Positions 56,687 through 63,508 of a stretch of DNA of 64,000 bases are shown here, in pieces; the first letter of the stretch is position 1; each line of letters opens with the position of its first letter. The position numbers were made by a program, and so were the translations under genes. Where the stretch lies: positions 1 to 64,000 of the IMG/VR virus record IMGVR_UViG_3300021962_000021. The stretch is one strand, 5' to 3'. The notes beneath the pieces are model-generated. The model searched no databases. It was not told where the DNA came from and saw only the letters and a program-made list of their open reading frames with translations.

Positions 56687-57289
56687 ATGAAAAAATTATT
56701 TACGTTATTTACACTTTTAGTTATTGGTGTTATAACATTCGCACAAGATACCGTTAGAGTTAAAAACAATGTATTCGAAGTTCTTTATTCACAATCATTG
56801 GAACAACCATTGATGATTAAATATCATTCAACAAATAGACCTACAAAGGTTAATAGAGGTGCTATGGATTTTTACAAAGAACCAAATATCAAAACATCCG
56901 ATGCTGATGATTACAAAGCAAACATATATGATAAAGGACATGGTGCACCCGCTGCAACATTCTCTGATAATATCGAAAATCTTAAACAAACATTTTCGTA
57001 TTTGAATTGTATTCTACAAGACCAATATCTTAATAGAGGTGAGTGGAGATTGTTAGAGGAACAAGAAAGAAAGTGGGATGATACTGAAAATTTAACAGTA
57101 GTAATTAAAGTTTTATTTGATAAGCCTGTTAAAAGAATACCAACAAATGCTGCAATACCAATTGTTTTACAAAAGCATATTTATTTTGAAAACCAAAAGA
57201 AATGGAAGTGTTATGTATTTTTAAATGAAAGACCTAAATATAAGTGGGAAGAATTAGAAATGATTTGCCCACCATCTGACCATAAATAA
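56687..57289 (+). CDS. exported DNA/RNA non-specific endonuclease (NucA family)
   Basis: signal TFA|Q; YDKGHGAPAA, LNRGEW..LE. Confidence 0.88.
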   Translation: MKKLFTLFTLLVIGVITFAQDTVRVKNNVFEVLYSQSLEQPLMIKYHSTNRPTKVNRGAMDFYKEPNIKTSDADDYKANIYDKGHGAPAATFSDNIENLKQTFSYLNCILQDQYLNRGEWRLLEEQERKWDDTENLTVVIKVLFDKPVKRIPTNAAIPIVLQKHIYFENQKKWKCYVFLNERPKYKWEELEMICPPSDHK

Positions 57290-57305: not shown

Positions 57306-57719
57306 GTGTTTAAACCAAATCATTTACACTTATTAGTGAAGGGATATATGAGCACCCCACCAAAAGAAGAAGCTCATTTGAATGAATTTTTTAAGAAATT
57401 AGTAGAGAAAGTAAGAATGGTAGTAGTTGCCGGACCAACATCCGTTTATGTTAATGAACCGGGTAATGAAGGAATAACAGGAACGGTGACATTAGCAACA
57501 TCGCATGCTAGTATTCACGTTTGGGATGCGGAAAGACCTGCAATGTTCCAATTTGATTTATATAGTTGTTCGGAATTTACAGCAGAAGAAGTATTAGAAG
57601 AATTAGATAATTGGTTTGGATTAGAATCAGCAAATTGGATAATGTTAGATAGAAATGGTGATGATTTTGATTCTATTGTATCCGGAAAATGGGAAGGGGC
57701 TGGGGTAACCACGTCGTAA
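57306..57719 (+). CDS. pyruvoyl-dependent S-adenosylmethionine decarboxylase-like proenzyme
   Basis: HLLV, GITGTVTLATSHASIHVW, FDLYSC; GTG start. Confidence 0.75.
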   Translation: MFKPNHLHLLVKGYMSTPPKEEAHLNEFFKKLVEKVRMVVVAGPTSVYVNEPGNEGITGTVTLATSHASIHVWDAERPAMFQFDLYSCSEFTAEEVLEELDNWFGLESANWIMLDRNGDDFDSIVSGKWEGAGVTTS

Positions 57720-58752: not shown

Positions 58753-59122
58753 GGGGATGTTTGGTATTGATTGCCATGCGAATGATAATATCACAAGTAG
58801 AGAAATGATACTATCTCTTAATATCGTATCGAAACAATAAATGACGAAAAGTCAACAATGACTTACGATGACCTTATGGCATTCGTAGGTATGGATTACG
58901 CTGTAGCAGCCTAATCCTACTCGGGTCGGAATACATATAACCTAGGAACAGAAGTATCTATAAAGGTGGAAAATTGACTGAACCCAAAATCGAGTCAAAA
59001 CATTGATTATGATAAAATGTAAAAACTCATATATTTGTCAGTTGTGAATAACTGAATAAACTTGTGAGACGTTGGTATTATGATTACTCGGTAAGACACG
59101 GGTTCGACTCCCGTCATCTCCA
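58753..59122 (+). ncRNA. ssrA: tmRNA
   Basis: GGGGATG/CATCTCC acceptor stem with G3-U, T-arm GGTTCGACTCC, tag ORF 58843-58914 ending YAVAA-stop. Confidence 0.95.
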
Positions 59123-59212
59123 CAAAAACGCTAATATGTAAAGTATTGATTGTCAATAAGGCGTTGATTATCAATGAGTTATAACTTATTGATTTTCAAT
59201 GACTTAAGAAAG

Positions 59213-59321: not shown

Positions 59322-59394
59322 CGTGGGGTAGTAGCAGCGGTAGCTCGTTAGGCTCATAACCTAAAGGTCGGTGGTTCGAATCCATCCCCCGCAA
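59322..59394 (+). tRNA. tRNA-fMet (CAT), initiator type
   Basis: C1:A72 mismatch, anticodon loop CTCATAA, canonical T arm. Confidence 0.92.
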
Positions 59395-59593
59395 CAAAGT
59401 AATTAAGGTTGAAGCCAATAGTAATAAAACCGACTATGTGAAAAAAATAAAGCCGGATACCTTAATAACTTATTTTAAAAAATATTTGGTAGTTTAAAAA
59501 ACTTTCCTTATATTTACAATGTTCAAATGATATATGACCTTATAGGCGATGAAAGATACTCGGGTAGTTGATTTTGAATAAAAAATAAATAAA

Positions 59594-59692: not shown

Positions 59693-60562
59693 AAGATTGA
59701 AAATATTTTACATAGTAGGCTCGTCCTACATAGTAAACAACCGCCGCCTATGGTGGTTAAATAAACTACGAAAGTAGGATAAAGTGAGAATGCTTGGTTT
59801 AGTATTCTTGCGGCATCAGCAATGGTGCTTGAGTAGGCAAGTGGGATATCATCTGAGCCTTGTACGAAAGGGTAACACTATATCGGAAGGGTTTGGGTGA
59901 CTGGGGATATGTAGAATCTCTAGTTGAGTTCGGAAGAACAATAAGAATAACCCATAGAATATCAGTAAGAAGTATGTGGCTAATCACTATATATCATTGC
60001 GGTATTCAATTTCAAAGTGGTCTTAAAACCAAGCTATCCGAAAGGACGTAAGGTATGTTAATGTACAAGTGGTGTTGTTATTAACCTTTAATGTGGGACA
60101 CCAATCCCTATTAATGAAGATGACTTAAAAAATGGTGTTGACGATAACACATTGGGTAGTTTAGTATTCTCTCGTTCAAAAGATGGGGGAGCTGGTTGGC
60201 AAGCCACTACCTGAACAATCTACAAACCAAACTCAAATTTGCTTTAGGTGCAAACTATAAATCAATTTTAAGCTTAAGTGCTTGCCAGTTACGGACGAAA
60301 GGTGTCTACATAGTAATGGGTTGTCCATTGCCACGATACCACCGCAAGTGGTCTGTGATTCTTACGAAAAGTTTCTAGTTCCGCAAGAATGAATTTGCTC
60401 GGCAGGGTAGAAGAAATAGAGTAATGAGAGAGTAGTCAGTAACTCAATGAGTGGTTAGCATTACTAACCGACACTGAACGGATACATCTCAAAAGGGTGT
60501 GGATAAGAAAGGAAAAAAATAATCTTTCTAAAGGACGTTCTTCCCAAATGTGTAATCTCAGC
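59693..60562 (+). ncRNA. large structured ncRNA, GOLLD-like
   Basis: ~870 nt without credible ORF, many GNRA-capped hairpins, own promoter, ends directly before a tRNA; boundaries approximate. Confidence 0.65.
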
Positions 60563-60571
60563 ATTTTATAA

Positions 60572-60665
60572 GCGGAGTTAGTGTAATGGTCCACGCGGGT
60601 TCGCCCACGGGTTAGCACACCCCTCTTCCAGGGGGGAAGATGTAGTTCGATTCTATGGCCCCGCT
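60572..60665 (+). tRNA. tRNA-Gly (TCC) with ~20 nt D-loop insertion
   Basis: CCCCT-CTTCCAG-GGGGG anticodon arm, U73, extra UUCG hairpin in D loop. Confidence 0.8.
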
Positions 60666-60996
60666 CAATTACGATTTTCGTAGTCTTTTTCCAATGTTGT
60701 TCTGGCAGGTGAGTGGACAAGTAGGTTAGGACTTTAAATATCAAACCTAAAAGTTGTAAGACTGTCAGTTTTTGTGGGGGAAGTTTTTTACTATAAACAA
60801 ACGTAATCTAACACGATATGATTACCGAATAAAAGTAGTAGGCCGCTACATTGAGAGTATTCGTTCCCCTTATTACTCTCTTTATTAAAGGCTAAATGGT
60901 AATTTGATGAGGCTAGTATTAACCGGAGCATGACTTGACGTGGCGTATTTTGAAATCGAATTACTTTTATTTAAAAAAATATTATATATATTAGAG

Positions 60997-61155
60997 ATGA
61001 AAACTTTAACATTACATACAAATTGTTCTAACCAATCATTGAGAAATGAGTGGCAGGGGATTAGTATGTTTAATGCTATATCAAATCCGGCAACGCTTAA
61101 TTTAGGCAAGGTGGATTATATTAGCAAGATGTTAGAGGACACTGATGTAGGATAA
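60997..61155 (+). CDS. short ORF, candidate leader peptide
   Basis: 52 aa MKTLTLHTNCSNQ...; stop 27 nt before a terminator that precedes the tRNA array. Confidence 0.45.
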   Translation: MKTLTLHTNCSNQSLRNEWQGISMFNAISNPATLNLGKVDYISKMLEDTDVG

Positions 61156-61182
61156 AATGTAAAAATTTTAGAACAATATTTG

Positions 61183-61214
61183 AAACCTCTAACTCACAAA
61201 GTTAGGGGTTTTTT
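61183..61214 (+). terminator. intrinsic terminator / attenuator
   Basis: AAACCTCTAAC / GTTAGGGGTTT stem plus T run. Confidence 0.8.
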
Positions 61215-61219
61215 GTTTT

Positions 61220-62338: not shown

Positions 62339-62602
62339 ATGGCACATTTAATACCAAATAATTCCACTCCATCGGTAACACAAATTAAACCCAAACCAAT
62401 ATTCGTAATGAGGTTTAGTAATTCAATGAGTGATGAAGATGCGAGACAAACTTGTGAAACGATATACAAATCCGATATGAATAATGAGTATCATATAATT
62501 GTAATTCGTAATGACAAAGATAGAGATGAGTTTGAATTATATAACGCAGATAAGATTGAAAGACAAGAGTGGAATGAAATAGTTAAAAAATTAAAGTTAT
62601 GA
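62339..62602 (+). CDS. hypothetical protein
   Basis: 87 aa ORF. Confidence 0.6.
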   Translation: MAHLIPNNSTPSVTQIKPKPIFVMRFSNSMSDEDARQTCETIYKSDMNNEYHIIVIRNDKDRDEFELYNADKIERQEWNEIVKKLKL

Positions 62603-63123
62603 GACGTAAGATAATATTCATAGATGTAGATGGCCCGTTGGCGTGGGGAACGTGGGGTGATGGTAGAGTTGAAATGAGTTTAGGTTCATCATCAACATTT
62701 AAAATACCATACGCTTGGGTTGAAGAAGATTGTCAGGCTCTTAAAAAGATTTTGGATGAGAGTAATGCAAAGATGGTATTAAGTTCAGATTGGAGAAAAC
62801 ATTTTAGTTTCTTACAAATGAAAAGAATATTTGAATACTACGGAATTGCAGGACACAATTTGATTGATATAACTACACATCAGGACCTATGGATGAAGTT
62901 GAGTAGACCTGCAATTGAGTGGGAGAGAGCAGCTGAAATCAAAAAGTGGGTAAAGGATAATAAAATTAGTAATTGGATTTCAATTGATGATATGCAGTTG
63001 AATAAACAATTCAAATGGATGAAAGTTCCACAATGGAGACATGTTCAGGTTGATGGTGATTTTGGAGTAGGTGGTAGATTAAGAGATAAGATTGATGAAT
63101 GTATCATCAAACTAAATAGATAA
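62599..63123 (+). CDS. HAD-domain protein (Swiss Army Knife RNA-repair-like HAD)
   Basis: FIDVDGPL, VLSSDWR, RAAEI..W, WISIDD. Confidence 0.75.
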   Translation: MRRKIIFIDVDGPLAWGTWGDGRVEMSLGSSSTFKIPYAWVEEDCQALKKILDESNAKMVLSSDWRKHFSFLQMKRIFEYYGIAGHNLIDITTHQDLWMKLSRPAIEWERAAEIKKWVKDNKISNWISIDDMQLNKQFKWMKVPQWRHVQVDGDFGVGGRLRDKIDECIIKLNR

Positions 63124-63214: not shown

Positions 63215-63283
63215 TGTGGGAAGGTTAGGTAACCCGTTTGGTCTCATAAGCCAGATATTCAGGTTCGATTCCTGGTCCCGCAA
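63215..63283 (+). tRNA. tRNA-Met/Ile2 (CAT) with shortened D arm
   Basis: intact acceptor, anticodon and T arms; 69 nt. Confidence 0.75.
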
Positions 63284-63289
63284 CAACAT

Positions 63290-63423: not shown

Positions 63424-63507
63424 GGAAAGATGGGTGAGTGGTTTAAACCAGCAGTTTACTAAACTGCCGATTCAAAAGGTCCGTGAGTTCGAATCTCACT
63501 CTTTCCG
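63424..63507 (+). tRNA. tRNA-Ser (ACT)
   Basis: long variable arm, G73, GCAGT-TTACTAA-ACTGC. Confidence 0.88.
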
Positions 63508-63508
63508 C

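Follow-up and report, generated by a model that had tools for sequence, protein, structure and literature searches.

The gene at positions 60572 to 60665 on the plus strand of the window, by which we mean the whole 64-kb stretch of DNA analysed here, is most likely a five-armed tRNA-like RNA linked to the large non-coding RNA GOLLD, and neither an intron-containing nor a dead tRNA gene. In the reading that we favour, to which we assign a probability of roughly 0.55, it encodes a genuine, selected RNA derived from tRNA-Gly, which retains a hairpin at its elbow, is linked to GOLLD, has a main role other than decoding and uses the hairpin sterically. The window covers the opening 64 kb of a virus record of 238,219 bp (31% G+C) that is complete by CheckV's estimate, and the presence of a tmRNA in this phage indicates that its host is bacterial.

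The gene is of the tRNA-Gly(UCC) type, measures 94 nt, carries no encoded CCA and scores 93.7 bits with covariance model R1. Its acceptor stem is formed by 60572-60578 (GCGGAGT, followed by UA) and 60658-60664 (GCCCCGC), with the discriminator U73 at 60665. The D stem GTGT/GCAC (60581-60584 with 60615-60618, followed by an A) is normal and closes a D loop of 30 nt, consisting of AATGG, an inserted block of 22 nt (60590-60611) and TTA. The anticodon arm (60620-60636) reads CCCCU-CUUCCAG-GGGGG and places the anticodon TCC at 60627-60629 within the loop CTTCCAG (60625-60631); it is followed by the 4-nt variable loop AAGA and by the T arm (60641-60657), which reads UGUAG-UUCGAUU-CUAUG, all on the plus strand. 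The gene and its 22-nt block are thus as the sequence-only reading had described them. That reading had also called the other arms and U73 intact, which holds for U73 and for the arms as such and has to be qualified by an A5.C68 mismatch, kept throughout one clade of homologs (clade A, below) among six standard acceptor pairs, and by two G.U pairs in the T stem.

Within the D loop, the inserted block separates G19 from U20/A21; it folds into a hairpin in which 60591-60599 pair with 60604-60611 around a UUCG loop (60600-60603). From the base upwards the stem comprises two C-G pairs, a bulged A (60593), a C-G and a G-C pair, a C.A mismatch (60596/60607) and GGG/CCC below the loop; the GGG-TTCG-CCC noted earlier is present, and the stem extends further than had been recognized. 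The insertion site is a variable pocket of the D loop, at which G18, G19 and A21 stay free for their usual tertiary contacts. The direct repeat CCACG...CCACGG was considered as a target-site duplication and was ruled out, as relatives lack the repeat. The five-arm structure is predicted at -31.9 kcal/mol, on par with the unconstrained minimum free energy of -31.5, while the unconstrained single-sequence fold of the gene contains no cloverleaf and does not differ from shuffled sequences (z=0). Folding of the single sequence thus tells little in this case, and the argument rests on the comparative data.

Standard tRNA finders do not see the gene. ARAGORN, run by default or with introns allowed, makes no tRNA call for 60572-60665, and with lowered thresholds or introns it returns either no call or nonsense calls there; the Rfam tRNA model RF00005 leaves the same positions unmatched even at E<=10. 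Omission in silico of 17-27 nt from the D loop restores an ordinary ARAGORN tRNA-Gly(tcc) call. The anticodon arm (5-bp stem, 7-nt loop, U33 and a purine at 37) and the T arm (G53-C61 and a UUCRANY loop) are those of an elongator tRNA; the D loop is far longer than the about 7-11 nt of elongator tRNAs, and the gene stays below the family threshold of RF00005 and ARAGORN. A cloverleaf search permitting long D loops, run on 2.6 Mb of phage DNA (about 270 arms), matched only the hairpin-bearing Gly and Glu tRNA-like families, the D loops of the other tRNA arms measuring 7-12 nt. Since standard finders miss tRNAs with a D-loop hairpin, such genes are systematically unannotated.

The neighbourhood is dominated by GOLLD. 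What had been called a GOLLD-like RNA proves to be a true GOLLD, whose conserved 3′ domain occupies 60152-60564 on the plus strand (Rfam RF02032, 278.6 bits, E=1.8e-78) and whose variable 5′ domain lies upstream on the same strand, from roughly 59400. GOLLD ends at 60564, 7 nt before the tRNA-like gene starts on the same strand, and just upstream of GOLLD stands a tRNA-Met(CAT) (59322-59395, plus strand; ARAGORN and Rfam), so that GOLLD carries one tRNA on each side, the tRNA-Met upstream and the five-armed gene downstream. The tmRNA precedes the tRNA-Met, and a large tRNA island extends beyond the five-armed gene. ARAGORN finds 15 tRNAs and one tmRNA in the window, the five-armed gene excluded, and the whole 238-kb genome holds 26 standard tRNAs. 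Beyond the window these include a tRNA-Gly(GCC) at genome positions 65141-65214 and a canonical tRNA-Gly(UCC) at 65273-65347, which makes the five-armed gene a redundant extra copy.

Directly 3′ of the gene, at 60670-60690 on the plus strand, lies a small hairpin, TACGA-TTT-TCGTA, followed by GTCTTTTT. Its core TTTCGT(A/G)GT recurs 3′ of other GOLLD-adjacent tRNA-likes, in a comparison made by eye between the window and eight further loci (L126, L130, L131, L154, L240, L014, L033 and L050). A separate, abundant plus-strand transcript (60705-60931) starts about 40 nt after the tRNA, with RNA contigs beginning at 60705 (X15) and 60706 (X19, depth 1936); it has no Rfam family match and is partly conserved in relatives.

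The RNA evidence consists of assembled metatranscriptome contigs, in which rare forms are lost, strand information is missing and mature tRNAs are poorly captured. The GOLLD 3′ domain is heavily covered by them, and one X15 contig (60328-60656) continues uninterrupted past the GOLLD 3′ end, through the spacer and across the hairpin, joining the GOLLD 3′ domain and the tRNA on a single RNA contig at equal depth. The suggestion that the gene is a partner of GOLLD is borne out to this extent, as a genomic and transcript-level association that is not obligatory. A number of short X15 records stop at 60656-60659; of these, one that stops at 60659 continues into Illumina adapter sequence, which marks a true fragment end 6-9 nt short of the tRNA 3′ end; RNA coverage is zero over 60664-60703. 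Near the boundary between GOLLD and the tRNA, contigs end at 60561 (X16, X17) and 60575 (X18), where X15 reads through. Contig ends are weak evidence, but such stops would fit joint transcription followed, as a rule, by cleavage at the tRNA 5′ end.

The same contigs bear on the nature of the insert, which the sequence-only reading had offered to explain as a non-canonical intron. On that account, 22 nt would be excised after transcription to leave a standard 72-nt tRNA-Gly. Removing the block in silico does yield a textbook tRNA-Gly, and archaeal tRNAs do carry short D-loop introns (PMC3241643). Several lines of evidence nevertheless make an intron highly improbable. No joint or deletion at 60590-60611 occurs in the contigs of six metatranscriptomes, from which rare forms may drop out. 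The host inferred from the phage tmRNA is bacterial, a bulge-helix-bulge motif cannot be drawn, the sole bulge being a single A, and neither a tRNA splicing endonuclease domain (tRNA_int_endo, PF01974) nor RtcB (PF01139) is encoded in the 238-kb genome, the controls being positive. The paired positions of the hairpin are, moreover, conserved like those of a structural arm, and 22 nt is far below the size of a group I or group II intron. In tRNA genes, group I introns usually interrupt the anticodon loop and need over 200 nt for their catalytic core; the insert described here has 22 nt and sits in the D loop.

The insert is not peculiar to one assembly. The GOLLD-tRNA stretch is present in at least 14 DNA metagenome runs, from marine, estuary and lake samples of 2018-2025, as well as in the six metatranscriptomes. 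Search patterns in which only the D stem and portions of the D and anticodon loops were fixed, and the insert was left free, matched 11 viral and 28 metagenomic contigs, which reduce to 16 distinct versions (about 35 contigs) and one chance hit. An insertion unique to this assembly and unconserved, the outcome that had been named as counting against the initial proposal, is contradicted by these 16 versions. An assembly artefact was likewise considered and is ruled out by the many independent assemblies and runs. A scan of cellular genome contigs gave two chance hits without a cloverleaf, and no homolog of the hairpin-bearing Gly or Glu genes was found in cultured phages, where the hits of one search fell on an ordinary tRNA situated between such genes.

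The homologs fall into two clades. Genes of clade A, to which the window copy belongs, immediately follow GOLLD. Those of clade B differ in the acceptor stem, and their anticodon stem has hardly a base in common with that of clade A yet is fully paired. Across 19 homologs, 88.6% of the cloverleaf cells are paired, versus 38-47% when the partners are slid, and two-sided changes are seen at all five anticodon-stem pairs and at four of the five T-stem pairs. Invariant in the same 19 sequences are G1-C72, C2-G71, G3-C70, U73, C35, C36, A37, G38, G10 and the whole D stem. The identity set of bacterial tRNA-Gly, which comprises U73, G1-C72, C2-G71, C35 and C36 (PMC9976931), is thus entirely present and invariant. 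The 5′ half of the anticodon loop is freer: positions 32-34 vary among the 19 homologs, C35, C36, A37 and G38 being fixed, and relatives show the loops CUUCCAG (UCC), CUCCCAG (CCC) and CCUCCAG, the last with C33; four variants of clade A have a loop of 8 nt, CGAUCCAG. Clade B copies stand on GOLLD-free fragments that are 7-18% complete. A diverged GOLLD was sought upstream of them and none was found, and the ORFs next to them are small and unassigned apart from one for a GIY-YIG nuclease, none suggesting itself as a binding partner.

The hairpin itself is preserved with more modest covariation than the cloverleaf. In clade A it is 89% paired, and the search for compensatory changes that the sequence-only reading had proposed returned one such pair, C-G/U-A, so that one of eight pairs is compensatory and six of eight are invariant. 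The base of the hairpin, CCAC...GGG with its bulged A, is the same in clades A and B. The loop varies (UUCG, UUUA, GAAA, GUAAA(A)), one middle pair alternates between C-G, C.A and U-A, its neighbour is G-C or A.C, and no homolog has both middle pairs mismatched together. Clade B hairpins are poor when compared with shuffles (z about -0.5). Formal covariation support is thus modest, and much of the case for the hairpin rests on its conservation and on its recurrence in other families. The proposal of a five-armed tRNA is upheld in that the hairpin is kept in two diverged clades, retains its pairing and is seen in RNA-derived contigs.

Close relatives, gathered via a neighbouring protein and searched with a covariance model of the cloverleaf only, bear on whether the gene is a duplicate in decay, in which a neutral, functionless insertion persists and the tRNA is kept only because its acceptor/T-arm fold lets RNase P define where GOLLD ends. 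The post-GOLLD ortholog has the hairpin in L126 and L131, and an alignment shows that it lacks precisely the block between G19 and U20/A21 in L125, L154 and L130, the last of which is visibly decayed, with an 8-nt anticodon loop and a decayed T arm. Taken with the canonical paralog, the single compensatory pair behind the hairpin and the frequency of aberrant tRNA-likes in GOLLD 3′ flanks, these orthologs speak for decay. We nonetheless regard decay as improbable, because the base of the hairpin (CCAC...GGG) and the entire D arm do not differ between clades whose anticodon stems are nearly unrelated, the two middle pairs are never mismatched together, the Gly identity nucleotides and anticodon-stem pairing are still selected, and other tRNA-like families have acquired unrelated hairpins of their own at this D-loop site.

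These other families came to light in the flanks of GOLLD. In a sample of 120 GOLLD 3′ ends from IMG/VR, ARAGORN calls a tRNA no more than 42 nt downstream of 24, in most cases a tRNA-Met; several tRNAs in these 3′ flanks are flagged as aberrant, and other tRNA-likes there go uncalled by ARAGORN. In a 483-kb phage (L052/L240), the body 3′ of GOLLD is of the tRNA-Glu type, with an odd anticodon loop and, after the D-loop GGU, a 22-nt hairpin unrelated to the one in the window. A D-arm pattern of this Glu type, with at least 18 extra nucleotides and no GOLLD sequence included, matched 15 viral contigs, mostly of 130-480 kb. The inserts measure between 17 and about 60 nt, always follow the D-loop GG directly and for the most part fold on themselves. 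One Glu-type family has up to three tandem genes with near-identical bodies and differing anticodon loops (UCG, UAG and 8-nt loops), and one anticodon arm is capped by UUCG.

Of the 12 Glu-type loci tested, 7 have a GOLLD, as identified with Rfam, at a distance of about 10-1200 nt. Four hairpin-bearing genomes each contain a single GOLLD, with tRNA-likes flanking it in G000, G001, G011 and G012, and in every GOLLD-bearing genome checked the hairpin-bearing tRNA-likes flank the sole GOLLD; two complete giant-phage genomes have hairpin-bearing tRNA-likes and no GOLLD. The Gly and Glu families carry their hairpins at one and the same D-loop site, and these hairpins are unrelated. We read the five-armed gene as a probable member of a wider set of Gly and Glu tRNA-likes of giant phages that preferentially flank GOLLD. 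That this elbow-extended class, with a hairpin at D-loop position 20 and rewritten or capped anticodon loops, comprises functional partners of the GOLLD nanocage is a tentative proposal, which we put at clearly below even odds. If it were true, such partners, as by-products, cargo or docking modules of GOLLD, would give a first concrete handle on its role.

A narrower form of partnership, in which the tRNA-like is attached to or docked on the nanocage as cargo or a handle and the hairpin blocks processing or contacts the cage, appears unlikely. It would agree with the RNA contig that joins the GOLLD 3′ domain and the tRNA at equal depth, with the flanking tRNA-likes of the four genomes named above, and with cryo-EM work on GOLLD that places tRNAs in the linker and proposes covalently linked tRNAs and an ‘inhibited storage’ (10.1101/2024.12.08.627333; PMC12990946). 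Against it, the contigs of three other RNA libraries stop at or near the boundary between GOLLD and the tRNA, the same tRNA is found without GOLLD nearby, and a specific loop contact is unlikely given that the loops differ (UUCG, UUUA, GAAA) and that the Gly and Glu hairpins are unrelated.

In the reading that we favour, a selected tRNA-Gly derivative with a retained elbow hairpin, GOLLD and the five-armed tRNA would be transcribed as one precursor, in which a cut by RNase P at the tRNA 5′ end would separate the tRNA and set the GOLLD 3′ end, and the tRNA-Met on the far side could do the same for the GOLLD 5′ end. The D-loop hairpin would stay in the RNA and form a fifth arm at the outer corner, or elbow, of the L shape. 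As all bacterial Gly identity nucleotides are kept, the RNA is probably charged by the host GlyRS. The effect of the hairpin would most likely be steric, altering which elbow readers engage, whether the ribosome, RNase P or host tRNA-targeting nucleases. A redundant canonical paralog and a drifting 5′ half of the anticodon loop suggest that decoding is not what is mainly selected, and on these comparisons decoding is probably not the main role of the five-armed RNA. The conservation of C35 and C36 would agree just as well with genuine decoding. As to the purpose of the arm, we give roughly equal weight to an arm that keeps the RNA away from elbow-reading machinery or marks the RNA for it, to the evasion of tRNA-targeting nucleases and to a role together with the cage.

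The combination of nuclease evasion with decoding deserves separate mention. A working tRNA-Gly could be hidden by its elbow hairpin and by the variable 5′ half of its anticodon loop from a tRNA nuclease of the host, or from a phage-encoded one that removes host tRNAs, and would then sustain the decoding of GGA and GGG during infection; we consider this possible, if unlikely. It would account for the invariance of the Gly identity nucleotides and of the NCC anticodon core and for the clustering of variation at positions 32-34, and it sits well with clade B contigs, which have no other tRNA within about 10 kb. D-loop-based escape also has a precedent in the PARIS nuclease AriB, which makes base-specific D-loop contacts and is impaired in cleavage by U16>C, phage T5 tRNAs having C16 (bioRxiv 10.1101/2025.02.04.636281). 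What speaks against a protected decoder is the unprotected canonical tRNA-Gly(UCC) in the same genomes, together with the 8-nt loops, the C33 and the decayed T arm of close relatives, all ill-suited to decoding. The tRNA elbow touches the ribosome at the A/T, P and E sites, and an elbow arm of 9 bp may hinder translation. We know of no tRNA-Gly-targeting nuclease here, which also weighs against evasion.

The GOLLD-tRNA neighbourhood itself is already known; for D-loop hairpin arms, or for systematically aberrant tRNAs flanking GOLLD, we found no description in the searchable literature, outside of which the original GOLLD papers of 2009 and 2020 fall. The architecture of tRNA is highly constrained, and a conserved natural D-loop helix at the elbow lies outside the textbook repertoire. 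RNase P, the ribosome (L1 stalk, uL5 and A-site finger), T-boxes and certain defence nucleases all recognize the elbow, and a natural extension of it is thus a ready-made probe of such interactions. It may also represent a new phage trick in the arms race centred on tRNAs. To our knowledge, GOLLD has had no known function since 2009, and its nanocage structures are now solved; the hairpin-tagged tRNA-likes at its ends suggest hypotheses that include tRNA-punctuated processing, tethered cargo and storage. Anticodon loops of 8 nt, and bodies that stay the same while their anticodon is exchanged, may point to non-standard decoding or to functions other than decoding.

Among known RNAs, the closest is the canonical tRNA-Gly(UCC) of bacteria and phages, with which the five-armed gene shares the cloverleaf arms, the 4-nt variable loop, the full Gly identity set, the nucleotides of the tertiary interactions (U8, A14, G18, G19, A21, G53 and C61) and the T loop UUCGAUU. 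It differs in its 30-nt D loop, in A5.C68, in being missed by ARAGORN and RF00005 and in its redundancy. Class II tRNAs (Leu, Ser and bacterial Tyr) also have a natural fifth helix that is kept in the mature molecule, its retention here being read from the RNA contigs. Their extra arm emerges from the variable region 44-48, on the inner side of the L, whereas the five-armed gene has a short variable loop (AAGA, 4 nt) and its arm branches off at the elbow, behind G19 of the D loop, which sets the gene apart from class II. A tRNA shape directly 3′ of a long structured RNA recalls MALAT1 mascRNA and the tRNA punctuation of mitochondrial transcripts, in which tRNA-shaped elements direct 3′-end processing; those systems are eukaryotic or mitochondrial, while the five-armed gene keeps its full aminoacylation identity and its cleavage would follow from the model above. 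Staphylococcus has a non-proteinogenic tRNA-Gly(UCC) that serves pentaglycine cell-wall synthesis and is thought to be diverted from the ribosome. It, too, is a redundant and atypical UCC isoacceptor beside a normal tRNA-Gly, and it has no D-loop arm.

The non-canonical introns of archaeal tRNAs are comparable as short D-loop insertions; they need a bulge-helix-bulge and EndA, and the phage has neither of these and a bacterial host. GOLLD is reported to lie in tRNA arrays, with env-38 GOLLD following a tRNA-Met and tRNAs sometimes located in the linker (10.1101/2024.12.08.627333; PMC12990946). The five-armed gene and the tRNA-Met likewise flank GOLLD. The tRNAs described in these cryo-EM papers of 2024-26 are ordinary ones, with no mention of D-loop hairpins or aberrant anticodon loops in tRNAs adjacent to GOLLD. 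Finally, a structured RNA module has been inserted into a tRNA loop by design, in Spinach-tRNA fusions produced in Escherichia coli, where no D-loop fusion of tRNA-Tyr (C16/G18) could be detected and stability and activity were confined to V-loop fusions (PMC5397188), an instability which indicates that D-loop additions can harm. The insertion described here is natural and follows G19, leaving G18 and G19 free for the elbow pairs, and the instability of the engineered D-loop insertion makes a conserved natural D-loop arm all the more noteworthy.

Recurrent elements were noted in 120 GOLLD 3′ flanks sampled from IMG/VR (L002-L121). Where no tRNA is present, a hairpin and GTGGTGGA often come after GOLLD; GOLLDs followed by tRNA-Met have AAGTGACTCC or GGTGGAGA 3′ of the tRNA, and those followed by a Gly- or Glu-like tRNA have TTTCGT(A/G)GT 3′ of the tRNA. 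These hairpin and motif patterns suggest a conserved element located beyond the 3′ end of the Rfam GOLLD model.

In the window, metatranscriptome contigs reveal a separate and very abundant RNA that starts at 60705/60706, about 40 nt 3′ of the five-armed tRNA, and extends over 60705-60931, possibly to about 61210. The RNA with this start reaches a depth of 1936 in run X19, and 60705-60931 is covered by one contig of run X15; an Rfam search of this interval returned no family match. Conservation of the region in most relatives is limited to two later blocks, 60899-61026 and 61131-61219. The 5′ start, GGCAGGTGAGTGGACA, resembles a GGTGGA-type motif found beyond the 3′ ends of other GOLLDs. Upstream, in the GOLLD 5′ and linker region (59950-60300), a number of runs yield RNA contigs that leave out 91-337 nt, such as a jump from 59960 to 60296, and variant letters are also plentiful. 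Related phages whose GOLLD linkers are shorter are the probable source of these skips, more so than splicing.

Close homologs of the five-armed tRNA carry 8-nt anticodon loops (CGAUCCAG, CAUUCCAG) or C33 (CCUCCAG), with C35, C36 and A37 retained. They are found in contigs L131 (13513-13608), L211 (8005-8100, minus strand), L215 (1056-1151), L217 (972-1067), L130 (12675-12746), L207 and L209. These RNAs may decode in a quadruplet or frameshift-type manner, or may have no decoding role.

D-loop hairpins are also carried by tRNA-Glu-type genes, up to three of which lie in tandem immediately upstream of GOLLD, every copy with an insert (contigs L247, 1474-1958, minus strand; L256, 8120-8609, minus strand; L249; and L254, 2117-2228). 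Their bodies are near-identical and their anticodon loops differ (UCG, UAG or the 8-nt UUAGUCAC); in one copy, a long UUCG-capped hairpin replaces the anticodon loop. A 483-kb phage has a tRNA-like of Glu type 9 nt 3′ of GOLLD (L240 1501-1597, corresponding to G001:C1 about 314029-314125; also in L052 and L252). This tRNA-like has a non-standard anticodon loop and a 22-nt D-loop hairpin, inserted at the same site as that of the five-armed tRNA and unrelated to it. Its relatives in L014, L033 and L050 have no D-loop hairpin, and L014 harbours a second, hairpin-bearing copy 166 nt 3′ of GOLLD.

In the window, ARAGORN also predicts a tRNA-Ser whose anticodon, ACT, is unusual (A34; 63424-63508), and a short third tRNA-Met of 70 nt (63215-63284; Rfam 29.9 bits, barely over threshold). 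The phage encodes a tmRNA of its own (58753-59125; tag ...MAFVGMDYAVAA). A protein with a HAD_SAK_2 RNA-repair-type domain (62599-63123) is located within the tRNA island, and a non-specific endonuclease (56687-57289) and an AdoMet decarboxylase-like protein (57306-57719) are encoded just upstream.

Among cultured phages, GOLLD is present but unannotated in Acinetobacter phages Ab15 (PP763259.1), whose record labels the region as hypothetical proteins, and vB_AciJM_313 (PX050566.1). Directly 3′ of GOLLD, both have a tRNA missing from the record annotation, Asp(GUC)-like with the T loop AUCGAAA in Ab15 (L258, about 1153-1230) and Asn(GUU)-like in vB_AciJM_313 (L257, about 1170-1250). The two phages could serve as laboratory models of GOLLD-tRNA processing.
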